Shown here in pieces: positions 28,885 to 62,975 of a DNA stretch of 64,000 nt (position 1 is the stretch's first letter; each line of letters opens with the position of its first letter). The position numbers and the translations under genes are program-made. The DNA is from Rebecca billardiae RCC1528 (taxonomy: Eukaryota > Protista > Haptophyta), in NCBI GenBank assembly GCA_965240325.2, contig OZ251239.1, positions 1,054,001-1,118,000 of the forward strand, given 5' to 3'. Below the pieces are notes generated by a model. The model made no database searches and was not told where the DNA came from. It was given only the letters and a program-made list of their open reading frames with translations.

Positions 28885-29774
28885 TGATGATGAATTCGGA
28901 GGCATGATGCGCGATGGCAACGTATAAGGCTCAATGCTTAGGACCGCCACTCGGCCTTCTTCTAATAAAGCCGCTTATATTCGGGTGCCGGGCCGCACCG
29001 CCGGACTGACTTTAGCTAAGACTGGCTTTAGTATACTTTTAAATACAGCAACCTGCGCTGCGGGCAGTGCATATATATATATGTACACAGACGAATCATC
29101 ATCTTAGGACGCACGACTACGAAGTGACGACGATGACCTCCACCTGGGCGCCCTGATGGCTGATCGTCCGTGACCGTGTCGTATTGTGGCTTGCATGCAG
29201 GTCGCCGCCAGTCGAGTACTGACAACGCACCGCTGAGAGTGAGACACGTCACAATCGTCACATGCGCCCGCCGCCTGGGGACGCGACCTCTCTGCTCTCG
29301 AACGGTTGTAGCCGCTTGATGAGCCCAACGCAATGGCCGCCAAAGAGCGCGCACGCCCGACAGATGCCAGACGCTGCAGCGGGCAGGCGAGCGCCGCTGA
29401 TCGGTACAGCTCAGCAGCCGGGGGCGTGGCCGAACGCTGCGACGGCCGTCGATTCCCACGCCGAATGTGCGCGGCGGAACCACCCTTGGCGGAACGTGCT
29501 CTCGACGCGCTCATACAAGTATGCTCGAGCGACTGCCTGGTGGTCCCGCTGAGGCCTGCCCCGGGCCCCCGGCACCGATGGTCGGGACGGCCATCGTGGC
29601 TTTCGTGCGGGCAACTCCGCCGGAGCGCCATCACGCCGAACACTCAGCTGACTCAGCTGCGTCTGACGGAGGCAGCGGACGGCGGCCTCGCCTCGAAGGC
29701 CAAGCAGTACTTCACTTCCCTTTCGTCGAGTGGGTTGGCATACGCTGGAACGCTGCGTGACTGATCGCGTGAGG

Positions 29775-31607
29775 ATGCCCCACACGTGCGGTCGAGCCGG
29801 CTGTGACAAGGTGCCGTCCTTCGGCATGCCGGGTGACACACGTGCTAGCCGCTGCGCCACGCACAAGCTGGCCGGCATGGCGGACGTGAGGAGCCCCAGG
29901 TGCGAGCATGCCGGCTGTGACAAGGTGCCGTCCTTTGGCATGCCGGGCGACACACGTGCCAGCCGCTGCGCCACGCACAAGCTGGCCGGCATGGTGGACG
30001 TGAAGAGCCGCAAGTGTGAGCATGGCGGCTGTGACAAGCGGCCGCATTTTGGCATGCCGGGTGAGAAACATGCCAGCCGCTGCGCCACGCACAAGCTGGC
30101 CGGCATGGTGGACGTGAAGAGCCGCAAGTGTGAGCATGGCGGCTGTGACAAGCGGCCGCATTTTGGCATGCCGGGTGAGAAACGTGCCAGCCGCTGCGCC
30201 ACACACAAGCTGGCTGGCATGGTGGACGTGAAGAACCGCAGCTGCGAGCATGGCGGCTGTGACACGCAGCCGAACTTTGGCATGGCGGGCGACACACGCC
30301 CCAGCCGCTGCGCCACGCACAAGTTGGGCGGCATGGTTAACGTGGTCGACCGCAGGTGCGAGCATGCCGGCTGTGACAAGGTGCCGTACTTTGGCATGCC
30401 GGGCGACAAACGTGCCAGCCGCTGCGCCACGCACAAGCTGGCCGGCATGATGGACGTGAAGAGCCGCAGGTGCGAGCATGCCGGCTGTGACAAGCAGCCG
30501 TCCTTTGGCATGCCTGGTGACACACGTGCTAGCCGCTGCGCCACGCACAAGCTGGCTGGCATGGTCGATTTGAAGAGTCGCAGGTGCGAGCATGCCGGCT
30601 GTGACAAGCAGCCGTCCTACGGCATGCCGGGCGACACACATGCCAGCCGCTGCGCCACACACAAGTTGGGCGGCATGGTTAACGTGGTCAAGCGCAGGTG
30701 CGAGCATGCCGGCTGTGACAAGCGGCCGAACTTTTCCATGCCCGGCGACACACGCCCCAGCCGCTGCGCCACGCACAAGCTGGGCGGCATGGTTAACGTG
30801 GTCGACCGCAGGTGTGAACATGCCGGCTGTGACAAGCGGCCGAACTTTTCCATGCCTGGTGACACACGTCTCAGTCACTGTGCCGCGCACAAGCTGGCCG
30901 GCATGCTCAGCTATCGCGCCATGCGCAAGCGCAAGCGGGCTGCAGCTCCTGAGCCTGAGCAGGGCGGCAGCGCAAAGCGCCAGCGCGTGCAGAGCAACAG
31001 TGGCAGTACGGCTGCAGCAGCTGCCGCTGCTGCCGGCTTGCAGCCGCACCTACAGCCACCGAGGGCCACTGCTCGCGCCGAGGCTCGCCCTCCGCGTCGC
31101 CCTGATGCCGCGAGCGGCAGTAGCCCGCACAGCCGCGGCGATGTGCCGGGCAAGCGCGCGGGGCCGAGCAGGGCGCATGCAGCGCGCACACAGCCCGCCC
31201 TAAGCACTGCCCCGCCCGCTGACGGGCCAGGCGGCAGTGGCAGCGGGGAGCATGCTGCAGATGCCCCGCTGCTCGGCCGGCTGGTCGCGCCCGCCGCGGA
31301 CACGCGGCACGCCGACGCTGCCGCCGAGCTCGCTGCCGAGCGCACCGCCACCGAGCGCATGCGCGCCGAGCTCGTGCACACGCGCATGCGGCTGCGTCTC
31401 GCCGAGCAGGCGGCCGACCCGTCGCACCTGCGCGTGCTGCGCTTGGTCATGGAGGGCGAGGGCGAGCCCGTGAGCGCACCACCGGCCGGAGGCCCACGCT
31501 CCAGTCCCGCGGCACGAGATGAGTCTGCTGAGCACCATGCTACGCTGCAGTACCTGCGCGAGCTCGAGGCGCGGGTGCGTGCGCCAGTCAGCACGCCGTC
31601 GCGATAA
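29775..31607 (+). CDS. EsV-1-7 cysteine-rich repeat protein: 10 x 38-aa C-x4-C-x16-C-x2-H repeats, NLS and coiled-coil tail
   Basis: CEHAGCDKxPxFGMPGDTRASRCATHKLAGMVDV repeats match the EsV-1-7 family; followed by RKRKR..AKRQR. Confidence 0.92.
   Translation: MPHTCGRAGCDKVPSFGMPGDTRASRCATHKLAGMADVRSPRCEHAGCDKVPSFGMPGDTRASRCATHKLAGMVDVKSRKCEHGGCDKRPHFGMPGEKHASRCATHKLAGMVDVKSRKCEHGGCDKRPHFGMPGEKRASRCATHKLAGMVDVKNRSCEHGGCDTQPNFGMAGDTRPSRCATHKLGGMVNVVDRRCEHAGCDKVPYFGMPGDKRASRCATHKLAGMMDVKSRRCEHAGCDKQPSFGMPGDTRASRCATHKLAGMVDLKSRRCEHAGCDKQPSYGMPGDTHASRCATHKLGGMVNVVKRRCEHAGCDKRPNFSMPGDTRPSRCATHKLGGMVNVVDRRCEHAGCDKRPNFSMPGDTRLSHCAAHKLAGMLSYRAMRKRKRAAAPEPEQGGSAKRQRVQSNSGSTAAAAAAAAGLQPHLQPPRATARAEARPPRRPDAASGSSPHSRGDVPGKRAGPSRAHAARTQPALSTAPPADGPGGSGSGEHAADAPLLGRLVAPAADTRHADAAAELAAERTATERMRAELVHTRMRLRLAEQAADPSHLRVLRLVMEGEGEPVSAPPAGGPRSSPAARDESAEHHATLQYLRELEARVRAPVSTPSR
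29787..30914 (+). repeat. Coding tandem array of 114-bp units (10 copies, last truncated)
   Basis: GGCTGTGAC and GCCGCTGCGCCAC(G/A)CACAAG recur every 114 nt. Confidence 0.95.
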
Positions 31608-38267: not shown

Positions 38268-38847
38268 CGCGAGCTACTGTCCTTATCGTCCCCTGACGAG
38301 AAGGTTACATCCGCACACCTACTAGACGCTGATAGTAACACCTAGTACGACGCGGAGGATAATCAGATTCGTCACTGGAGACAACGAAACATCCGAAGGC
38401 CTCAAACCACACACACACAAATATATATATAATTTAATGTCAAAATATATAGAACACAAAATTAAAAACCAAAATAAAATTCATGCACCATTTACGCATG
38501 CCAACGGCATCATGATCATTTTTATTACTATCTAAATTTTGTTTTGATAGTAACATTGTTATTACTAACTAGTATAATGACGTTGTTACTGCTATAGTTA
38601 GTAGCATTGGTAGCTATCTCGGTAGTGACACTGTCACTACTAAGCTAGATCTATACTTCAATCTATACTTGCTATAATACTATACTTCAATCCCGGTCAG
38701 TCATCTCAGACATTGATAGATAGATATCCGACTCGAGTCGTCTCGGCGTCTGTCATTCTCTTGAAAGTTATTCTGGCGTCCGCCGGAACAGTCATCAGCA
38801 TAGTCTAGCTGCTCTCTCTCTCTGTCTCTAGCTAAGCTGCTACTAGA

Positions 38848-38896
38848 ATCATTATCATCATCATCATCCATCATCATCATCATCATCATCATCATC
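38848..38896. repeat. (ATC)n microsatellite, imperfect
   Basis: ATCATTATCATCATCATCATCCATCATC... run. Confidence 0.85.
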
Positions 38897-39000
38897 GTCG
38901 TCGTCTGAATAGTAAAGCTTGTTACAAAGTACGACTACTAAATATACTAACTTTAGCGTGTATCTGTGAAGTCCTGTCTAACTACCCGTTCGACCGCCTA

Positions 39001-39340
39001 TGCCCTATCCGGACGGGGCATCGAGCTCGAGCCAGGCCCGCATCCAGACCTGCGTGTAAAGTTGCAAAGTGTAAAGTAGGTCCGGGAGCCCAGCCGGACT
39101 TGTCCGGCCAGTCCGACCGGACGCGTGCCAGCTGCCACCGGGCCCGGCACTCTCCGGCGCCTCCGCCCGGCGCCGGCCGGTCGCCGGGGCGCCGCGGCCG
39201 AGAGGCAGTGCAAAGTTGTAAAGTGTAAATTACATCCGGGAGCCAGGCCGGACCTATCCGGACAGCCGTCCGGCCACGCACGCGTGCGGGCTGTGCCGAC
39301 GCGCCGCGCCGGCCGGCTGCCGGGCGCACGAGGGCGTGTA
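39001..39340 (-). repeat. Left subterminal repeats: inverted, degenerate copies of the 200-bp unit, continuing at 44076-44190
   Basis: TGTAAAGTTGCAAAGTGTAAAGTAGGTCCGGGAG at 39055 and a second box at 39209 are reverse complements of the 46331-47310 boxes. Confidence 0.85.
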
Positions 39341-39342
39341 TA

Positions 39343-40150
39343 GTACCCCTCAGGTTTAAGCGTTCGCTTCGCTGGCTACGTGATTGCACGCCCGCTCACG
39401 CCGTGACGAGCGCACCATGGCGGCTCTCTCGCTTGTGGCGCACGGTCGGGGAGCACCCGCGTCTGCGCAGACACACGGCTCGCCCGCAAGTGTGCTGTGT
39501 CGCGCACGCGCGCGCTCGCGCGGCCGGCCATCGCGCACAGACCTGACTGGTCTCACATGCACCAGCATGGTCGTGCACGCACAGCGCCGCTCCGCGCACG
39601 CAATAAATTCGAGCGTGGTGCGCATGCACGTACACTCTGTGTCCCTGGTCCACACACAGCGTGTGAGCTCGTGCTTTGACCACGTGCAGGCGCACCACAG
39701 ACTTTCGCGCAGCTGCCGCGCCGGGCCGTGCCAGCGGCTCGACAGGCTCAGCTCGTGGGCAGCGCTCGCTCGATTGCATGCTCCTGCCGCGCAGGGTGCC
39801 CAGCTTGCTGCGCTCGGTGTGTACTGGCGCGCTCGGACGGCACCCCGCGTACGCCTCGGGCCACGCGTGGGAGCCTAGCTCCACGCACGGAGGACTCGCA
39901 GGCGCAGGCCGGCGGCTGCCTCACACGGCTTGGTCGGGAGGCCGCCGCGCGGCTACCGTCGAGCTCGCCGATCGGCTGCACCTACTTTCAGCGCACGCTA
40001 CCGCCGCCTCGCGCACGACACGGCAAGGTTGAACACGTGACTGTGGGCGGGCATCAGCCCCAAGTACGCAGCCATCAGCACCACGGCCTTCACCTTCAGC
40101 GCCGACGATAGAGCCGCCGCTTGATTTTATCGCTTAAACTTGAGGGCCAC
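39343..40150. mobile_element. 808-bp MITE-like element, copy 1 (20-bp imperfect TIR, flanked by TA)
   Basis: GTACCCCTCAGGTTTAAGCG..CGCTTAAACTTGAGGGCCAC (17/20 inverted), TA on both sides; matches copy 2 at offset 3923. Confidence 0.85.
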
Positions 40151-40470
40151 TAAGTCGGAGGCTGCTGAAAACCCGCGTGAGACGTGAGCATCATCGTAGG
40201 AGGTGTCGACGAAGATTCACTCTGACGCGCGCAGTCCGTTTCGACTCTGGCTGGCGCGCGCGCTATATGGCTAGGACGGATCGTGCCGGAGCGCTCGGAG
40301 TAGCCGGCTTCTCCCCGTTGCACGAGACTGTGCTGCTCCATTGGCAACATGACTGGGTTGTCATTCGTAAGCGTCAGTCAGGGACGTGACATGTGATGAC
40401 CATGGCCTAGGCCACTGAGACCGCAAGATCAAATCAGCCACAGGAGTTGTGACCTCGAGCGCGAGCGCGC

Positions 40471-42480
40471 GCGCTCGGCACGCCCCCCGCGCGTGTACCG
40501 CATGCCCGAGCCCGCCCTTCAGATGCGCACGGCGCGCGCGCCGACTCGGCGCTTCTCGCTGGCTCTAGCCGCAGCCGCACCTCTCCGTAGCCGTTGGTCG
40601 TGACACACCCAGCTCAGCTTGGTCAGATTCGAGCTCGAGCTCTCGCGCGCGCGACAGTAGAGGCGGGCCGCCGGTGCCATGTGTACGCTCATCGGGGCCG
40701 TACCTGGCGCTGCGCGCCGCGCCGGCGCGCGCGCGTGTGCGCACGCGCCGCAGCAGCCGTGTCGTTGCTTGAGCCGTGAGGCGCCGGCTGATCGGCAGGT
40801 CGGGAGGTCGTGAGATCTGAGCTGAGCCGAAACTCCGGCCGTGGCGGCGGCGCAGGATGAGCGCCGAGCGCGCGCGCGCGCCCTCGCGCTCGGCACGCCC
40901 CCCGCGCGTGTACCGCGTGCCCGAGCCCGCCCTTCAGATGCGCATGGCGCGCGCGCCGACTCGGCGCTTCTCGCTGGCTCTACCCGCAGCTCTCCGTAGC
41001 CGTTGGCCGTGACACACCCAGCTCAGCTTGGTCAGATTCGAGCTCGAGCTCTCGCGCGCACGACGGTAGAGGCGGGCCGCCGGTGCCATGTGTACGCTCA
41101 CCGGGGCCGTACCTGGCGCTGCGCGCCGCGCCGGCGCGCGCGCGTGTGCGCACGCGCCGCAGCAGCCGTGTCGTTGCTTGAGCCGTGAGGCGCCGGCTGA
41201 TCGGCAGGTCGGGAGGTCGTGAGATCTGAGCTGAGCCGAAACTCCGGCCGTGGCGGCGGCGCAGGATGAGCGCCGAGCGCGCGCGCGCGCCCTCGCGCTC
41301 GGCACGCCCCCCGCGCGTGTACCGCGTGCCCGAGCCCGCCCTTCAGATGCGCATGGCGCGCGCGCCGACTCGGCGCTTCTCGCTGGCTCTACCCGCAGCT
41401 CTCCGTAGCCGTTGGCCGTGACACACCCAGCTCAGCTTGGTCAGATTCGAGCTCGAGCTCTCGCGCGCACGACGGTAGAGGCGGGCCGCCGGTGCCATGT
41501 GTACGCTCACCGGGGCCGTACCTGGCGCTGCGCGCCGCGCCGGCGCGCCAGCTTGCGCGCACGCGCCGCAGCAGCCGTGTTGTTGCCTGAGCCGTGAGGT
41601 GCCGGCTGATCGGCAGGTCGGGAGGTCGTGAGATCTGAGCTGAGCCGAAACTCCGGCCGTGGCGGCGGCGCAGGAGGAGCGCCGAGCGCGCGCGCGCGCC
41701 CTCGCGCTCGGCACGCCCCCCGCGCGTGTACCGCGTGCCCGAGCCCGCCCTTCAGATGCGCACGGCGCGCGCGCCGACTCGGCGCTTCTCGCTGGCTCTA
41801 GCCGCAGCCGCAGCTCTCCGTAGCCGTTGGCCGTGACACACCCAGCTCAGCTTGGTCAGATTCGAGCTCGAGCTCTCGCGCGCGCGACAGTAGAGGCGGG
41901 CCGCCGGTGCCATGTATACGCTCACTGGGGCCGTACCTGGCACTGCGCGCCGCGCCGGCGCGCCAGCTTGCGCGCACGCGCCGCAGCAGCCGTGTTGTTG
42001 CCTGAGCCGTGAGGCGCCGGCTGATCGGCAGGTCGGGAGGTCGTGAGATCTGAGCTGAGCCGAAACTCCGGCCGTGGCGGCGGCGCAGGAGGAGCGCCGA
42101 GCGCGCGCGCGCGCCCTCGCGCTCGGCACGCCCCCCGCACGTGTACCGCGTGCCCGAGCCCGCCCTTCAGATGCGCACGGCGCGCGCGCCGACTCGGCGC
42201 TTCTCGCTGGCTCTAGCCGCAGCCGCACCTCTCCGTAGCCGTTGGCCGTGACACACCCAGCTCAGCTTGGTCAGATTCGAGCTCGAGCTCTCGCGCGCGC
42301 GACAGTAGAGGCGGGCCGCCGGTGCCATGTATACGCTCACTGGGGCCGTACCTGGCACTGCGCGCCGCGCCGGCGCGCCAGCTTGCGCGCACGCGCCGCA
42401 GCAGCCGTGTTGTTGCCTGAGCCGTGAGGCGCCGGCTGATCGGCAGGTCGTGAGGTCGTGTGAGCTGAGCTGAGCCAAAC
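40471..42480. repeat. Tandem array of about 5 units of 409-415 bp
   Basis: Equivalent positions at 40519, 40934, 41343, 41752 and 42167; units near-identical. Confidence 0.95.
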
Positions 42481-43265
42481 CTCTGGCCATGGTGGTGGCG
42501 CGCGGGCAGCTGTGACCTCAAGTGCGGGCGTGCACGCGCGTCGCACAGCCCTGCATCGACGTTACCGGCATCTGGCTCGGTGAAGTCCGGCCCAAACATA
42601 TGAGCCCCAGCACCATCTCAATGGCTTGGCCGAGCCCGTCGTTCACGGAGAGGTCGTGGCGATCATAGGTCGCTGCCATCGCAGTCTTCGATACGCGCTG
42701 ACCCTTCCTGTATGCCACGGCTAAGCTCAAGTTGGCCATGATCGTCGGCGCCGCTGCTCGCTGTGCGCATGGTCGCACCGTGGGGCTCTCGGCCGCCGGC
42801 GGCGGTCGCCCTGCAGCCATGCACAAGCTGCTTGCCGATTGGTCGGTTACAAGAATCTACTTTTGAATCGCAGCCATCATCCGTCCAAGAGCTCCGGCGA
42901 CGGCCGCGTGCGGCGCGGTGGCGGCCGCCTGGGCGACACAGCGCGCGCAGCACCCGGCGTTAGAGCGCAATCGACGCATACAACCTCAAAGAGACAGCGC
43001 TAGTGGGTCGTACTATCGTGGTTTGCAGCCCTTCTCTCCATGCTCTGCGCATTGCCACCGCCGCGCGCCGCAACGCTTAAGCATCAGCGAGCTCTCGCAA
43101 ATCACTACGCGCATGGTCTCCTCCTCGCCCACCAGGGCCGAATGATCGGAGGTCGCGCTGTGGTGGAATACCAACCTAAATATTGTCGTGCGCGTGGTGC
43201 AGCCCGGGCGCCTCAGCGCACCCCTGGCACCAGCGCACTATTTACCTCTCTTTTATTACCACTTA

Positions 43266-44073
43266 GTACCCCTCAGGTTTAAGCGTTCGCTTCGCTGGCT
43301 ACGTGATTGCACGCCCGCTCACGCCGTGACGAGCGCACCATGGCGGCTCTCTCGCTTGTGGCGCACGGTCGGGGAGCACCCGCGTCTGCGCAGACACACG
43401 GCTCGCCCGCAAGTGTGCTGTGTCGCGCACGCGCGCGCTCGCGCGGCCGGCCATCGCGCACAGACCTGACTGGTCTCACATGCACCAGCATGGTCGTGCA
43501 CGCACAGCGCCGCTCCGCGCACGCAATAAATTCGAGCGTGGTGCGCATGCACGTACACTCTGTGTCCCTGGTCCACACACAGCGTGTGAGCTCGTGCTTT
43601 GACCACGTGCAGGCGCACCACAGACTTTCGCGCAGCTGCCGCGCCGGGCCGTGCCAGCGGCTCGACAGGCTCAGCTCGTGGGCAGCGCTCGCTCGATTGC
43701 ATGCTCCTGCCGCGCAGGGTGCCCAGCTTGCTGCGCTCGGTGTGTACTGGCGCGCTCGGACGGCACCCCGCGTACGCCTCGGGCCACGCGTGGGAGCCTA
43801 GCTCCACGCACGGAGGACTCGCAGGCGCAGGCCGGCGGCTGCCTCACACGGCTTGGTCGGGAGGCCGCCGCGCGGCTACCGTCGAGCTCGCCGATCGGCT
43901 GCACCTACTTTCAGCGCACGCTACCGCCGCCTCGCGCACGACACGGCAAGGTTGAACACGTGACTGTGGGCGGGCATCAGCCCCAAGTACGCAGCCATCA
44001 GCACCACGGCCTTCACCTTCAGCGCCGACGATAGAGCCGCCGCTTGATTTTATCGCTTAAACTTGAGGGCCAC
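43266..44073. mobile_element. 808-bp MITE-like element, copy 2 (direct orientation)
   Basis: Same termini as copy 1; all ORF-track translations inside the two copies are identical. Confidence 0.85.
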
Positions 44074-44587
44074 TATATGACAGTGTGAAAAAGTAAATCC
44101 GGGCGCCTCCGGACGGGGCATCGCGCGCCGCGCAAGCTGCTTGGCCCAGCAACCCCCCGTAAAAGTTGTAAAGTGTAAGTAAGTCCGGGGCTTTCGCGGG
44201 TCCAATCCGGGATCCCGCAGCCCGAGCGGCGGCGCGATGTTCGCCGCCATGGTCGATGGTGTTCGCAAGCACGTTCAGAAGCCGCCCGCCCTCGACGACG
44301 CGATCTGCACGTGCGCGCGTTGGTCAGAGCACACGCGTGACGTGGGTGAGTCGGGGGACTACCCACTACGAAGCAAAGTAGAGCGTGAAGCAAGGTAGAG
44401 TGTGTTTCCGCGTGCGCGCTCGGGCAGCTCTGCTGTGACCCCTCGGCCACGTCGTGATGTGTGCGTCCGCGCGCACGGCCACGCCAGCGTGGCCAGTGCG
44501 CTTCCTCTTCAACGACACCAACGAGCTCGCCCTGGCGCACAACGTTGGCAGCAGCGCCGTGACTACACGGCTGCTGGTGGTGCGCGT

Positions 44588-45125
44588 GTCCGGTTGGCCA
44601 CACCCTCGTGACTCTGCGGCTGCGCGCAGAAGCAGCGCCACCGGCGTGCTGCTGCCTGCCGGCATGCTGGTGGCGCCCGCGCCCGCGCCGCCGCCGCCAT
44701 TTTGTGACCGTCCCACAGTGCGCCCCGCTGCATGCGCCTTGTGGCGCGCGTCCGGTTGGCCACAGCCTCGTGACTCTGCGGCTCTGCGGCTGCGCGCACA
44801 AGCAGCGCCACCGGCGTGCTGCCGCTGCCGGCATGCTGATGGCGCCCGCGCCCGCGCCGCCGCCGCCATTTTGTGACCTTCCCGCGCCGTGCGCCCCGCT
44901 GCATGCGCCGTCTGGGGCGCGTCCGGCTGACCGCAGCCTCGTGACTCTGCGGCTGCGCGCGCAAGCATCGCCACTGGCGTGCTGCCGCTGCTCGCATGCT
45001 GATGGCGCCCGCGCCCGCGCCGCCGCCGCCATTTTGTGACCTTCCCGCGCGGTGCGCCCCGCTGCATGCGCCGTCTGGGGCGCGTCCAGTTAGCCACAGC
45101 CTCGTGACTCTGCGTCTCTGCGGCT
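44588..45125. repeat. Tandem repeat of 162-171 bp, about 3.2 copies
   Basis: Unit starts at 44588, 44750, 44921 and 45084; each full unit has CTCGTGACTCTGCG and GCCGCCATTTTGTGACC. Confidence 0.9.
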
Positions 45126-46321
45126 GCACGCGCATCTACCGCGGCGGGCTGCGCCTGCTGTTCACGGCCAAGGCGGACGGCGAACCCCGTACATCCCCGC
45201 CGCGGTCGTTGCCACCGCCGGCGACGGCGTCGTGCGCTGCGAGTGGCTTGCGCGCCTGCCCGCGTGGCACGCCCTCCGCACCCGCACTGTGCCCGCGGCT
45301 TGGCCCACACGCGTGCACAACGAGGCGGTCGAATGGGCAGCGCGTGCGTAGACGGCACCTGCGCCGTCGGGTCAGCGCCGCCCGTGCGCCGGGCGTGCGC
45401 ACCTTCCCGCCTCGCCAGCTGGCGCGCGAACCGCCCTCGCCGCGTGGCTAAACGAGCAGCTCGGCTCGCGCGGCGCGGGCGAGCCGATCAGTGCGCGCCC
45501 GGCGGCGCCGGGCGCTGGCCGCCGATTACGCGCGTGTACGCGGGGCGCTCGCCGGGTCTACTCGCGACGTGCTCGACGGCGAGTCGATGGTGTGACTACA
45601 AGCGCAGTGAGCACTGGCGGCGGATTGTCTTCTACTTCGCCAAGCTAGACGGCATCGACCTCTGCTGCGTGGACGACGCGTGTGTCCACGCGCACGGCCG
45701 CGCAGGCGCAGCTGCCGTGCGCCTTCGTGGCTTCCTTTTGACGGTGCCGACGGGCTCGCCCCCTCACCACGCGTGGCCTGCGCGGCCGTGCAGCGCGGGC
45801 ACGGTGGCTCGCGCGGCAAGGCGCCGGTTGCGCGCTCGCAGCAGTTTGCAGCCCTCCGGCGCGCGGCGTTTGCTGCAGCGCCGTGACCACGCGGCTGTGG
45901 GCCGCGCCACTGGTGCTGCTGGCCGCCGCGGCCATGCCGCCGCCGCCATGATACGACCTTTTCGCGCTGTGCGCCCCGCTACACACAGCGTGCGTGGACG
46001 ACCGCGCTGCGCCTCGCGCCAAATGGCGCCCAGCAATACGGATGCGCACTGCACACTGCGTGCAGCGGGTTGAACGGCCCTGGCTGTGGCGTGCAACGTG
46101 CGCCGTAGAGGCGTGACTCGCCAGCCCGCGGCGGGCGTAGCGCGCGCACGCACGGGCGAGCAGCACTACTGCGTGTTGCTCAGCCGCGCCCGCGCCGCGC
46201 CATCGGTAGGTGGTGGCGCCCTCGACCGGTATCGAATCGCCCTCCCTCACCTACCTCCCTCGCCCGGGCGGGTCGATCGCGGGCGCCGGCATCGCGATCA
46301 AATCGCGTCCGGCCGCGTCGT

Positions 46322-47312
46322 CCCGCCCGGACCTACTTTACACTTTACAACTTTACAGGCCCTCTCGCGCCCGCGGCCCGGCGGCGGCGCGGCGGCCGGC
46401 GGGCCAGCATGCGTCCGGTCGGACTGGCCGGACATGTCCGGCTGGGCTCCCGGACCTACTTTACACTTTACAACTTTACACGCCGGGCTGGGTGCTGGCC
46501 TGGCTCGTGCTCGATGCCCCGTCCGGACGTGCGCTCCCGGACCTACTTTACACTTTATACAACTTTACAGGCCCTCTCGCGCCCGCGGCCGGCCGGCCGG
46601 CGGCGCGGCGGCCAGCATGCGTCCGGTCGGACTGGCCGGACATGTCCGGCTGGGCTCCCGGACCTACTTTACACTTTACAACTTTACACGCCGGGCTGGG
46701 TGCTGGCCTGGCTCGTGCTCGATGCCCCGTCCGGACGTGCGCTCCCGGACTTACTTTACACTTTACAACTTTACAGGCCCTCTCGCGCCCGCGGCCGGCG
46801 GCGCGGCGGCCAGCACGCGTCCGGTCGGACTGGCCGGACATGTCCGGCTGGGCTCCCGGACCTACTTTACACTTTACAACTTTACACGCCGGGCTGGGTG
46901 CTGGCCTGGCTCGTGCTCGATGCCCCGTCCGGATCTGCGCTCCCGGACCTACTTTACACTTTACAACTTTACAGGCCCTCTCGCCCCCGCGGCCGGCGGC
47001 GCGGCGGCCAGCATGCGTCCGGTCGGACTGGCCGGACATGTCCGGCTGGGCTCCCGGACCTACTTTACACTTTACAACTTTACACGCCGCGGGCTGGGTG
47101 CTGGCCTGGCTCATGGTCGATGCCCCGTCCGGACGTGCGCTCCCGGACTTACTTTACACTTTACAACTTTACAGGCCCTCTCGCGCCCGCGGCCGGCGGC
47201 GCGGCGGCCAGCATGCGTCCGGTCGGACTGGCCGGACATGTCCGGCTGGGCTCCCGGACCTACTTTACACTTTACAACTTTACACGCCGGGCTGGGTGCT
47301 GGCCTGGCTCAT
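46322..47312 (+). repeat. Right subterminal array: five units of about 200 bp, each with two AT-rich ACTTTACA-triplet boxes
   Basis: AC(C/T)TACTTTACACTTTACAACTTTACA at 46331, 46454, 46541, 46662, 46749, 46860, 46947, 47058, 47147 and 47258, with two alternating linkers. Confidence 0.95.
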
Positions 47313-48190
47313 GGTCGCGCCAGCCAGATCAGTCGCGCGCGCGCGGCGGCACTGCGCGCGCGCGGGGCGCGCGTGCCTTTCCTAGAAACTTCCGCAGAGC
47401 CGCGAGAAGGTTACACTTTACATAGTGACAGGGCTGGACCAGGCTTACTAGTTACACATAGGAGACCACGACGTTACATATAGGAGGCATAGGCTACATT
47501 TCTACTATACGGCTTTTCTGGGGGGTGTAACCTTCTCGTGACAGGACCACCACCGCTACTGTCAGTATAGCTACAGGTTTATTCAATAATTGCTCGGACT
47601 ACCGACGATCAGGTCGGAGATCCGCGGGTCCGCAAGACTTGGAGCCTGCTGCTGCCCGAGGTCGGGCAACGTTCTGTGAGAGTGCTAGGCTAAGAGTGGC
47701 ACCTGACGCCAGTCCGCGATTATCAACGGAGTCCGTGACGGTGCCGTGCCGATTCTAGTCACCGCCGTCACTAGTCAGACGGTCAATCCCGGATTCCGGG
47801 CGCCCGCGCACCCGCATCAGCCTTGCTCTGTCGTCGTCGCTCGTGCCGACCGACTGATGCGACGTGCCCAGTGTGCAAATTTTATGATGGTGCGCACGTG
47901 GAGTCGCACCGAAACGCATGCGCACTCGCGGGTGACACTGCCCGCCCAGGACCAGATCCAGGCCCGATTGCGGTGCGCGCGCACGGTCGGCCAGCTGTAC
48001 ATCTGTGGCGCCAGGCAGGCCGCCCGTGACAGGTATCCACGACGAGGTTACCGGCCGCAGTGCCTGGCGCCGTGCGCGCAGCTGCCGTCAATCATGGCAG
48101 TAGCTCCATCGCTGGGGTTGTCGGTCTTATTCAGGTGCATCTAATCTCCCGTAACGGTCGAGCACCCCTCGCTAGGCGAGGGGTGCGGCG

Positions 48191-48770
48191 GAAACGACAG
48201 TGGAAACCCGGGGACTTTGTCCCCGCGCCCCTATCGCGGGCTCTGGCGCGCGAACGCTTTGTCACTACTGGCTCCCCGAGGTGGAGAGCGGCGCTCCGTG
48301 CACCAACAAAGACATCCCCAGCCGCATGTTGCCACTCGACACCTCGTCTCGCCTCGCGCGGAGCCAACTTGTCGTGTGCGGGAGCCACCCGTAGCACACT
48401 GGGCCGTGTAGCGACGCGCGTGGCGGGTCAACAGTGCATCGCGAAGGCGTCGCACGCGCAATCCGTTGAGTACATACTCATGTCTGTCCCATGGCACGTC
48501 GTGCGCCGCCGTGTGCGCCGAGGCACTCCCGACTCGCGACGCGCCGCGTGCAGCACACAGCCTGTGCTTCGGGTAGCTCCCGCACACCACAAGTTGGCTC
48601 CGCGCGAGGCGAGACGAGGTGTCGAGTGGCAACATGCGGCTGGGGATGTCTTTGTTGGTGCACGGAGCGCCGCTCTCCACCTCGGGGATCCAGTAGTGAC
48701 AAAGCGTTCGCGCGCCAGAGCCCGCGATAGGGGCGCGGGGACAAAGTCCCCGGGTTTCCACTGTTGTTTC
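48191..48770. mobile_element. Foldback element / long inverted repeat (208-bp arms, 164-bp loop)
   Basis: 48191-48398 is the reverse complement of 48563-48770 with about 5 mismatches; no TSD recognised. Confidence 0.8.
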
Positions 48771-48914
48771 TGTTGGCGGTGTCGCAGAGCGACCCGCCGG
48801 CCGTTACAGGGCCATTAGAAGGCGGTGGGTCTTATTGGTTGAGCGCGCGCGGAAATGTCCGGCCGCCCGGGTCCCGGGTGCCGAGAGACACACTGCGCGA
48901 AAAGACGACGAGCG

Positions 48915-50317
48915 ATGGCGACCAGCCCGGCTGATGAGGCGGCCGTCCTCGCCGAGCACGTGCTCAAGTTGAGCGTTCCCACCGCGCTCTCGGCACTCGC
49001 GCTCCTCGCGATCGTCTCACTGTGCGTGGTGTATACCATCCTCTCGCTCCGGCGCGAGAAGGCCAAGGCCGAGCAGGCCGCGCAGCGCGCCAACCAGGCG
49101 CTGCATGAGGCGCGCGCGCGCATCAGCCAGCTCGGCCTCGACCTGATGGCGGTCCGCAACTCGCTGATGCACTCGCCCGAGAGCGTGGAGAACGGACGCC
49201 GCTTCAAGGCGCGCTGGAGCGACGTCTTCGTCACCACCTACCCCAAGTGCGGCACGACCTGGATGCAGCAGATCGTGCAGGCGTTGCGCTCGGGCGGCTC
49301 GCTCGAGTTCGGCGAGATCTGCGAGGTGATGCCGTGGGACATCGTCGCGCAGGACTGCGCGCAGTCGCTCGACGCGGAGCAGCCGTGGTTCCCCCGCGCG
49401 TTCAAGTCGCACGAGTCCGCCGAGACCATCGCGCCCGGCGGCCGTTACATCTACGTGCTCCGTGACCCGTGTGACGCGCTCGTCTCGTTCTGGCGGTTTC
49501 TCCCCGGGTACATGGGGCTGCGGCCGTCGGACATCAAGCTGGAGGACTTCACCGACGCGGTGCGCGGCGGTTTTGCGCCGCGCGTGCACGGCGCGCGCGG
49601 GCCGACCCGCCCGTGCGCGGGAGAGCCAGAGGGCCTCGCGACCAGCTGAGCGAGGCCGCGCGTCCACCGCGCCTGCCCCGCGCGACGCGCGTGCGCACGT
49701 GTGCATGCGCGTGCGGCCGGCCGGCTTCGCGCCTGCTGCGCGGCGCCATGCAGATCTTCGCCGGCGTGAGCAAGTCGGGCACCATCTGGAACCACCTGCT
49801 CGGCTGGTGGCACCGCCGCCACGAGCCGGACGTCCTCTTCGTCTTCTACGAGGACCTCCTGGAGGACCTGCACGGCCAGGTGCGGCGCGTGGCTGACTTC
49901 TTGTGTGTCGGGAAGAGCGGCGGCGGCGGCAGCCCGGCGGGCCCGGGCTTGCGAGGCGGCGGCGGCAGCCCGAGCACGGGGGTCCTCGGCGTCGAGCGCG
50001 AGACGCTGGTGCGCATCGCGACGAAGCAGTCGCTGCACGCGTTCATGTCCGCGCCCGAGCACGCGCACCACTTTGACGACCACTTCGTGCGCGGGAGGCT
50101 CGCCGTGCGCATGCGCCTGCCAGCAGACAGCGAGCTCGACGCCCGCGCGAGCAAGGTGCGCCAAGGTGGTGGGCGCTCGGGCTACGGGCTCCCGCCGGCG
50201 ATTCAAGCCAAGCTCGACGCCGAGTGGGTGCGCATCGTAGAGGCGGCCACTGGCATCCGATGCTACGCCGAGATGCGCGAGATCGCGCACAGGGAGGCGG
50301 CGATGATGAACAGATGA
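48915..50317 (+). CDS. Sulfotransferase (Sulfotransfer_1) with N-terminal TM; intron 49560-49753
   Basis: 5'-PSB DVFVTTYPKCGTTW, RAFKSH, 3'-PB YVLRDPCDALVSFW, WNHLLGWW, FYEDL, KVRQG. Confidence 0.92.
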
Positions 50318-60575: not shown

Positions 60576-61685
60576 TCACAGCACCTTCAACTGCGCATGC
60601 TCGTAGCCGAAGTAGCCCTTGTTGCGATCGAACAGCTCCACCAGCGCCTGGATGTACTTGCCGTGGTACTCGTCCAGCTGCTGCGGCGTCGGCTCGGCGA
60701 TTTTGGGCAGGAGCATCGGCTTGCCCACCACAAAGTAGAGCCCGAGGTCCCTCCGCGGCAGCGGCGGGAAGAACCAGCGGCCGAGCGGCATGATGGCGGG
60801 CACGTTGAAGTCGGCGAGCCACGTGCGGAGCGAGGTGAAGCCCTGCGGGTTGTAGTACGTGTCCGCCTCGCCGAACACGTAGCACGGGTACAGCGCGTAC
60901 CCGTACCGCAGCGCCAGCTTGACGAATCCCTTCTTCTTCTTGATGTACGCGACATGCCGGCCGCGGCAGCTCACGGCCGCCTCGTGGAAGCCGCCGGGGA
61001 TGAGCCCGAGCGCCTCGCCGCGGTCCATGAGCGTGATCATGCCCTTGCGGTCGGCCGGCCACGTCGAGCGCACGGGGTCGACGATGAAGTGCCGGAAGAG
61101 CGGCGAGTCGCACAGCAGCCGCACCGCCAGCCCCTGCTGCGGCAGCGGGCGAGGCATCCACTCGCGCCCAAATCGGATCGGGTTGCGCAGGTGGTTGGCG
61201 GCCATGAACCAGGAGAACATGCCGTGCGGGTGGTACGCCCAGACGCCGGTGGGGAGGTCCTTTGAGAGCGCGAACTCGTAGCACGTGTGCGCCCCGTGCT
61301 CGTAGTAGTCGCCGCTGTCGACGAGCAGCTGCTGCACCCACTGCATGTATGGCAGGCGCAGCCCGACGTGCGGCAGCGCGCAGAACACCATGGCCCCGCC
61401 GATCACGGCGGTGGCGAGCGGCAGCGACGAGCCGAGCGCGAGGTAGATGAGGTACCACACCGCCGCGGTCGTGGGCAGCGCGATCACGAGCTGAGGCGTC
61501 GACGGCCTCGGCTGCATCACGTTGAACACGTTCAGCAGCAGCCCGACCTGCCAGCACGTGATCACGAAGAGGTGGGAGATGACGCCTTTGATGTAGCCTC
61601 GCCACGTCCCATGGTGCGGCCCCGGACCGCGGTATGTCGGGAAGATCTTCGACAAGTCGCGACCCCCGTGCGATGCGCCGCCCAT
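60576..61685 (-). CDS. DGAT2: Diacylglycerol/monoacylglycerol acyltransferase, DGAT2 family
   Basis: YHPHG, IPGGFHEA, KKGFVKLALRYG..P.YVFGE, VVGKP, YIQALVELF; start ATG 61685. Confidence 0.9.
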   Translation of the reverse strand: MGGASHGGRDLSKIFPTYRGPGPHHGTWRGYIKGVISHLFVITCWQVGLLLNVFNVMQPRPSTPQLVIALPTTAAVWYLIYLALGSSLPLATAVIGGAMVFCALPHVGLRLPYMQWVQQLLVDSGDYYEHGAHTCYEFALSKDLPTGVWAYHPHGMFSWFMAANHLRNPIRFGREWMPRPLPQQGLAVRLLCDSPLFRHFIVDPVRSTWPADRKGMITLMDRGEALGLIPGGFHEAAVSCRGRHVAYIKKKKGFVKLALRYGYALYPCYVFGEADTYYNPQGFTSLRTWLADFNVPAIMPLGRWFFPPLPRRDLGLYFVVGKPMLLPKIAEPTPQQLDEYHGKYIQALVELFDRNKGYFGYEHAQLKVL

Positions 61686-61764
61686 GGCGAGCGGCGACGG
61701 CGAGCGAAGTGGCCGTGCCGGGTGGTGGCGAGCGGCCTTGATGAGGAAAGAGCCGGAGTGCTGA

Positions 61765-62877
61765 GCCAAGGGAGTCAAGGGTGCCCGCGCCCCAGTGGCG
61801 CGCTCGCCGGATGTGAGGATACACCTTTTTGCCCGCGGCCTGCGGCGGGCGGCGGCGAGGGCGTGCTCCGCTGGCGGGGCGAGCGCACGGGGCACGGCGC
61901 TGCGGGCGCGGATGTGCCCGCGAAGCCGGCGCGTGCAGACGGGCTGTTGCGGGAGAGTATTCGGCGCCCTCCTGCGCCGCGCGACTTGCGCCACGCCTCT
62001 TTCGCCTCGGCTCAGAGCAGCGCGCACGCACGCGCCGCCTCAAGGCCAGCCTTGCCGCGCCGCAGCCGGCCGCGCGCGCGCCGTGCGCGGCGCGGTCGGG
62101 AAGGAACGGGCGCTGCTGCCGGGCGAGATGGCAAAGGCATATGCGCACGCCATGCCGCCCCGCGGCGCCTAAATGAGCGTGTCGTCGGTCTGTTTGCATG
62201 CCTCTTCGACTTGTCACAAATGGTGTGCACGGCTGCGCGGTCGTGACCCTTGTTGGGACGATCATTGAGACACAGAATAGTGCCAGACGGGCACGCGGGC
62301 TACTCTTACATGCATGTTCATCACCGCGTGTTCATGTAGAAGTGCTGGGTGCGACGCTTTCCTCGCGCTGATGCTCTTTCATCATCTTCTGCGAGCTCAG
62401 GTCTGGCTTCGTGCACGACAAGTGATCAGCACTCGTCAACAGCTGTGCGGATCCGTTCTCGTGCTCTTTCGCGGCGCCGCGGGGCGGCATGGCGTGCGCA
62501 CATGCGTTTGCCATCTCGCCCGGCAGCAGCGCCCGTTCCTTCCCGACCGCGCCGCGCACGGCGCGCGCGCGGCCGGCTGCGGCGCGGCAAGGCTGGCCTT
62601 GAGGCGGCGCGAGCGTGCGCGCTGCTCTGAGCCGAGGCGAAAGAGGCGTGGCGCAAGTCGCGCGGCGCAGGAGGGCGCCGAATACTCTCCCGCAACAGCC
62701 CGTCTGCACGCGCCGGCTTCGCGGGCACATCCGCGCCCGCAGCGCCGTGCCCCGTGCGCTCGCCCCGCCAGCGGAGCACGCCCTCGCCGCCGCCCGCCGC
62801 AGGCCGCGGGCAAAAAGGTGTATCCCAACATCCGCCGAGCGCGCCACTGGGGCGCGGGCACCCTTGACTCCCTTGGC
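61765..62877. mobile_element. 1113-bp foldback MITE with 405-bp TIRs and TGA target duplication (PIF/Harbinger-like target)
   Basis: 61765-62169 is inverted at 62473-62877; TGA at 61762-61764 and 62878-62880; reconstructed empty site GCTGAGC. Confidence 0.88.
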
Positions 62878-62975
62878 TGAGCGGATTCTGTGGGCTGTGG
62901 CGCTGGTGCGCAGGCACCGGACTTCGTCAGACTGCCGACCGGGTGAGCGCGCGCCGCGCGCGGTAAGTTCTTGAC

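Follow-up and report, generated by a model that had tools for sequence, protein, structure and literature searches.

The sequence analyzed was a 64-kb stretch of DNA from Rebecca billardiae RCC1528 (the whole stretch is referred to here as the window, it contained no N, and all coordinates are window positions), and the subject of the analysis was a block of ~4.7 kb (39343-44073) that displayed the layout module-internal region-module and was nested in a larger repeat-laden element (the host element) of roughly 38.98-47.32 kb. The block was composed of the following parts from left to right: (i) the left 808-bp direct-repeat module (39343-40150, plus strand), (ii) a single TA (40151-40152) at the joint between left module and internal region, (iii) the internal region, below called the cargo or core (40153-43263, 3111 bp), (iv) a single TA (43264-43265) at the joint between internal region and right module, and (v) the right 808-bp direct-repeat module (43266-44073, plus strand). 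The whole block was flanked by one TA on the left (39341-39342) and one on the right (44074-44075), which made up its target-site duplication (TSD), and every joint within it was likewise a single TA.

The two modules, each taken as TA plus 808 bp plus TA (39341-40152 and 43264-44075), were identical at 812 of 812 positions with an offset of 3923 bp, and the identity stopped immediately at either side; the preliminary description of this DNA had reported identical 808-bp elements with terminal inverted repeats (TIRs), in direct orientation and 3923 bp apart, and this was confirmed with the TAs included. Each module resembled a miniature inverted-repeat transposable element (MITE) and was non-coding. 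Its 5′ start was GTACCCCTCAGGTTTAAGCG and its 3′ end was the reverse complement of GTGGCCCTCAAGTTTAAGCG, giving a 20-bp TIR with three mismatches (17/20 positions matching, or 19/22 if the TA was counted) that lay at 39343-39362 and 40131-40150 in the left module; the module termini were GT..AC. The 16-bp core of this TIR occurred at the four module ends only in the 64 kb (0.31 matches expected by chance), and a window-wide search found no further copies of the module or the cargo. The outer TIRs, namely that at the left of the left module and that at the right of the right module, made up a proper inverted pair. Five module ends were observed when one from a second locus (see below) was included, and 5/5 adjoined TA.

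Identical 808-bp direct terminal repeats around a non-coding core, together with a 4-bp TATA duplication also readable at the outer flanks of this one site, would suit a non-autonomous long terminal repeat (LTR) retrotransposon, similar to a large retrotransposon derivative (LARD) or a terminal-repeat retrotransposon in miniature (TRIM), with LTRs that had inverted ends by chance. This explanation was hardly credible: a 20-bp TIR is atypical for an LTR, and the TA was found beside all observed repeat ends, those facing inward and that of the second locus included. An LTR retrotransposon was rejected on the lack of TG..CA ends and of any plausible primer-binding site or polypurine tract beside the repeats on either strand; the only primer-binding candidate starting with TGG, TGGTAATAAAAG, would require an all-A/T acceptor stem, and there was no purine tract at the required side.

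The cargo consisted of a left unique part of 306 bp (40153-40458; unique in the window, with no TIR of its own and no Pfam match), a satellite (40459-42501) of 5.0 units of 409-415 bp that were 97% alike, and a right unique part of 762 bp (42502-43263) with no recognizable coding. The DNA of the window was roughly 70% G+C, and long open reading frames (ORFs) were frequent there. The ORFs of the block had no match in Pfam even at E = 10, the most protein-like of them had none in a protein atlas, the long module ORFs had no relatives by homology search of a protein collection, and exact look-up of the module, cargo, and junction ORFs in protein and contig collections returned nothing. The cargo contained no Rfam family and no tRNA. 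No transposase was found in the 64-kb window, which held ordinary genes only.

The terminal 100 bp at either side of the cargo were aligned with one another and with the module ends, and the scores of 13-17 were no better than those of shuffled sequence (mean 14.1, maximum 22); the cargo as a TIR element in its own right was rejected on this ground. It therefore had no ends of its own and was unlikely to have jumped in alone, and on the sequence the outer TIRs of the modules were the sole inverted pair able to move it. The preliminary description had also stated that the two inner flanks of the cargo, joined over one TA, form the palindrome ACTTAAGT; they do, and the chance of this was ~1 in 64 given a central TA, for a feature noticed post hoc. 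The palindrome would be in keeping with insertion of the module where the two ends of the core had formerly met, as they do in a tandem array or a circle, and it decides nothing. The junction TTACCAC-TTAA-GTCGGAG was earlier proposed as the mark of a circle, but a circle formed by recombination between the two modules would not contain it; it would point to a cargo whose two ends had at some time been fused.

These features of the cargo ends bore on a stepwise build-up, i.e., independent insertion of two modules and the cargo at the same TA, for example of the cargo into a module dimer sharing a TA. The single-TA joints throughout the block were such as nested TA-targeted insertions leave, and the palindrome of the joined inner flanks would be a plausible TA target context. 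However, three hits on one dinucleotide would be required, a cargo with neither TIRs nor end similarity above chance had no evident means to insert alone, and the cargo-module joint recurred at a second locus, so that a history of this kind was quite improbable.

The host element was then compared with and without the block. Its left part (38982-39340) was composed of subterminal repeat units with the box AAAGTTGTAAAGTGTAAA up to the insertion site and included inverted arms (39007-39136) matching the array at 46407-47317, while in the rest (44076-47320) the interrupted unit continued, accompanied by internal 163-171-bp repeats and by a right-hand ~200-bp array. The box AAAGTTGTAAAGTGTAAA was present 12 times in the host element, on the plus strand at the left and on the minus strand in the right-hand ~200-bp array. 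For reconstruction of the empty site, 39150-39342 was joined to 44076-44260, and the product, aligned with the reverse-complemented right-hand array, matched across the junction with no interruption; the unit that the block had split was complete except for a few small indels. The flanks thus rejoined on the host's own repeat unit, and therefore module, cargo, and module together filled one TA and no part of the cargo was host sequence. The insertion site, TGTA[TA]TATG, was AT-rich, as few other spots in the region were. The earlier claim that removal of the block restores one subterminal repeat unit, and hence that it arrived as one block, held in that the host flanks aligned without a break; the accompanying composite-transposon interpretation was upheld in part, in that the block was foreign to its host, occupied one TA site, and had outer TIRs arranged as an inverted pair.

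The region, otherwise roughly 70% G+C, was interrupted at 38400-38960, immediately to the left of the host element, by an AT-rich island that contained an (ATC)n microsatellite. In contigs of the same strain, alternative left flanks were seen at this island, with loose ends at 38926 and at 38945, and TTAA was inserted after 38951.

The read data were those of the only two public runs that contained any of the stretch, in the form of short-read contigs. A contig of the Logan run ERR14847148 was 100% identical to the window over 4573 bp upstream of the block, and therefore public reads of the same strain exist. Two contigs concerned the inner joints of the block: (i) a 292-bp contig was an exact match to 40123-40414 across the left module/cargo joint, carrying the TA at 40151-40152 exactly, with only 30 letters of it in the module, and (ii) a variant contig covered 42821-44075, i.e., part of the cargo, the TA at 43264-43265, and the whole right module, over 1255 bp with six differences. 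The latter then ran for 74 letters into sequence that was neither the host flank nor found elsewhere in the window, and it departed exactly at the terminal TA of the module, where its flank read TA-CCTC. The run with this contig contained 0.64 of the stretch's sampled words plus several exact contigs; if that run came from the same strain, the variant contig would represent a second locus of the same genome, not a strain difference. As far as these contigs go, the cargo-module joint is thus multi-copy and ends where a transposon end would be expected. The presence of the same cargo-module joint at a second locus, ending at the module end, argues that cargo and module move together. The preliminary description had suggested a search for the cargo elsewhere; the right cargo-module joint was found at the second locus, and the window contained no other copy.

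The second copy was known from its right core-module joint and the module end, its left half not being among the recovered contigs. Compared to this locus, the variant contig had 5 differences over 443 bp of cargo and 1 over 812 bp of module (Fisher p = 0.02), so the core, with a divergence of 1.1%, had ~nine times more differences per base than the module. This contrast is a hint only, and it may reflect either homogenized modules or a mixture of copies within the contig.

The same contigs bore on the possibility of an assembly artefact, in which a solo module in the host would have been misjoined through repeats to a module-cargo locus elsewhere. No contig was recovered for 39148-39944, in which the left outer junction lies, and host DNA was joined to the right outer junction in none of the contigs listed, both of which would fit such an error. 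It would nevertheless need two symmetrical misjoins across 812-bp repeats, which long reads span easily; moreover, both inner junctions were present in independent short-read contigs and the assembled window was free of N, and an artefact accordingly carried very little probability.

Two further contigs touched the module. A 247-bp contig from a 2018 aquatic metagenome run (X1) matched the module interior (39693-39939) with one difference, and either the alga or the element is therefore present in an environmental sample; metagenome pattern scans with the TIR and with an internal 30-mer gave no match. A contig of the same strain matched only 56 bp of the module (43466-43521), with unrelated sequence on both sides, and it may belong to a different repeat family of this genome sharing that segment.

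Taken together, the block at 39343-44073 was best explained, with somewhat better than even confidence, as one non-autonomous DNA transposon that would have moved as a unit from its outer ends and that has a repeat-core-repeat organization, i.e., long terminal direct repeat (LTDR)-internal region (INT)-LTDR. What was observed here comprises the anatomy of the block, its TA flanks and clean insertion, the absence of recognizable coding, and the core-module joint in a second genomic copy; the type of transposase, mobilization in trans, and the use of the outer ends are what we infer from them. Two identical 808-bp non-coding LTDRs, each with short TIRs, enclose the 3.1-kb, mostly satellite core, and the outer TIRs of the left and right modules are paired in normal inverted orientation. 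The transposase would be supplied in trans, would most likely be of a TA-targeting Tc1/IS630/mariner type, and would cut at these outer ends; the whole 4.7-kb unit would be pasted into a TA at the AT-richest spot in the subterminal repeat of the host transposon, with duplication of the TA.

Four points weigh against this explanation: (i) with no transposase in the window, the TA flanks and the TIRs were the only basis for the superfamily; (ii) the contig of the second copy did not reach its left end, and what was observed of that copy thus falls short of a complete unit with its own TA duplication; (iii) no read or contig spanned the block; and (iv) composite cut-and-paste transposition leaves unexplained why the modules had 0/812 differences from each other when the core diverged by 1.1% between the loci.

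The principal alternative was entry by recombination: a solo module would have been resident at the TA, and either a circle of module plus core, released from another copy or a multimer through recombination between its modules, integrated into that solo module by homology, or a full copy elsewhere served as the template for repair of a break in it. This predicts the exact layout, the TA flanks, and the direct orientation, and both anatomy and flanks come out alike under transposition of the whole unit. A circle, or translocatable-unit, model has been proposed in print for the LTDR-INT-LTDR architecture (KolobokP, PMC9587614) and also for IS26, and concerted evolution of the modules would fit a divergence between the two loci that was lower in the module than in the core. 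Against it, no solo module was seen in the window, a crossover gives identical modules only if the resident and the incoming copy were already identical, and none of the data favored it over transposition of the whole unit. Entry by recombination was on balance unlikely, although it kept real weight beside whole-unit transposition.

The perfect identity of the modules also bore on two models in which it is a product of the movement itself. In the first, a single module on a circular donor would transpose replicatively in an IS26-like, cointegrate-type reaction, leaving target-module-cargo-module-target; it would account for perfectly identical modules despite the divergence of the core between loci. 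The identity may, however, reflect youth or gene conversion, and the contrast in divergence comes from a single contig in which copies may be mixed. Eukaryotic TA-targeting transposases are not known to form cointegrates replicatively, which counts further against this model; beyond module identity no observation spoke for it, and it was very unlikely. In the second, the modules would be regenerated at each move, a circle of one module plus core entering a new TA either replicatively or by targeted recombination in the manner of an IS26 translocatable unit. This was improbable; if true, it would make the block a eukaryotic DNA transposon that resets its long direct repeats to identity, as LTRs are reset, without reverse transcription.

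Three other repeat structures were recognized elsewhere in the window. A foldback at 48191-48770, with 208-nt arms that were 98% complementary and 164 nt apart, lay just upstream of an ORF with a sulfotransferase domain (48855-49649), and an exact look-up of this ORF gave no match. Another foldback at 61760-62882, with 410-nt arms that were 98% complementary and 303 nt apart, overlapped a long minus-strand ORF (60579-62039, diacylglycerol acyltransferase domain) at the ORF's end. Ten tandem 114-bp units that were 81-92% alike were located at 29666-30991.

The block was finally compared with known systems of similar build. KolobokP elements are animal composite-like DNA transposons with the structure LTDR-INT-LTDR, and non-autonomous families, solo LTDRs, and (LTDR-INT)n multimers have been reported (Kojima and Bao 2022, PMC9587614); their authors discussed both transposition of the unit and re-entry of a one-LTDR circle at an LTDR, two routes also put forward in the preliminary description, and in 2022 the build was described as unlike other DNA transposons and as known only from animal Kolobok elements (PMC9587614). 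This precedent indicates that a transposon of the LTDR-INT-LTDR design can work in eukaryotes, with solo LTDRs, multimers, and non-autonomous members among its forms. KolobokP and the block shared the LTDR-INT-LTDR organization, non-coding LTDRs with short TIRs of their own (11-18 bp in KolobokP and 20 bp in the block), and one target duplication around the whole unit, and non-autonomous members were present in KolobokP. They differed in several respects: (i) the ends were 5′-RR..YY-3′ in KolobokP, while those of the block were GT..AC; (ii) the TSDs of KolobokP were 3-5 bp and TTAA-derived, while TA was found at 5/5 module ends of the block; (iii) the LTDR was about 450 or 660 bp in KolobokP but 808 bp in the block; (iv) KolobokP encoded a Kolobok DDD/E transposase together with a His-Me nuclease, while the block had a mostly satellite core without recognized coding; and (v) KolobokP was found in animals only, while the host of the block was a haptophyte-type alga. 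Non-autonomous KolobokP families also lacked these proteins, and missing coding alone was thus not decisive for membership; the block was rejected as a KolobokP member on its GT..AC ends, TA flanks, and 808-bp repeat.

Maize Ac/Ds macrotransposons (PMC9910405, PMC9339288) were similar in that the outer ends of two closely linked elements in direct orientation acted as one transposon and carried the DNA between them, with one target duplication. They belonged to the hAT superfamily and made 8-bp duplications, unlike the TA of the block, and they were rare laboratory or natural events arising from ordinary linked insertions, with no standing family and with resident chromosomal sequence as the intervening DNA. 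What is common to composites and macrotransposons was also found in the block, in which two complete end-bearing modules and the intervening DNA made up one unit with a single target duplication. Such a layout has been published for eukaryotes, in KolobokP (PMC9587614) and in the maize Ac/Ds macrotransposons, and the composite layout of the block is probably not a one-off accident.

Other systems shared single traits with the block. In TIME-COMPs (MITE-bounded composites, PMC13367494), protein-less MITEs mobilized in trans bracket a cargo that moves along. Bacterial composite transposons and IS26 pseudo-compound transposons likewise have two short mobile modules that bracket a cargo, and the translocatable-unit pathway of IS26 yields identical direct copies; all three kinds are, however, prokaryotic, the modules of classical composites encode the transposase, and what is carried is usually a selectable gene instead of a satellite. 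Tc1/IS630/mariner elements and Stowaway-type MITEs resembled the block in the TA target, the TA duplication, and the short TIRs on a non-coding derivative, while ordinary members have one TIR pair and no long direct terminal repeats. The TA flanks and short TIRs point to the Tc1/IS630/mariner group as the probable relatives of the block.

Viewed against these systems, the block corresponds to KolobokP in build, but it is TA-flanked, protein-less, and filled with satellite, and its host is a haptophyte-type alga. A TA-flanked and apparently Tc1-like version in such an alga would show that the LTDR design arose more than once, and it would offer a second system for the questions of unit integrity, persistent repeat identity, and the involvement of circles. 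This copy is of value because intact units of the repeat around it allow the empty site to be reconstructed, which directly shows modules and core at one TA; its other contribution is evidence for a non-autonomous version at two or more loci.

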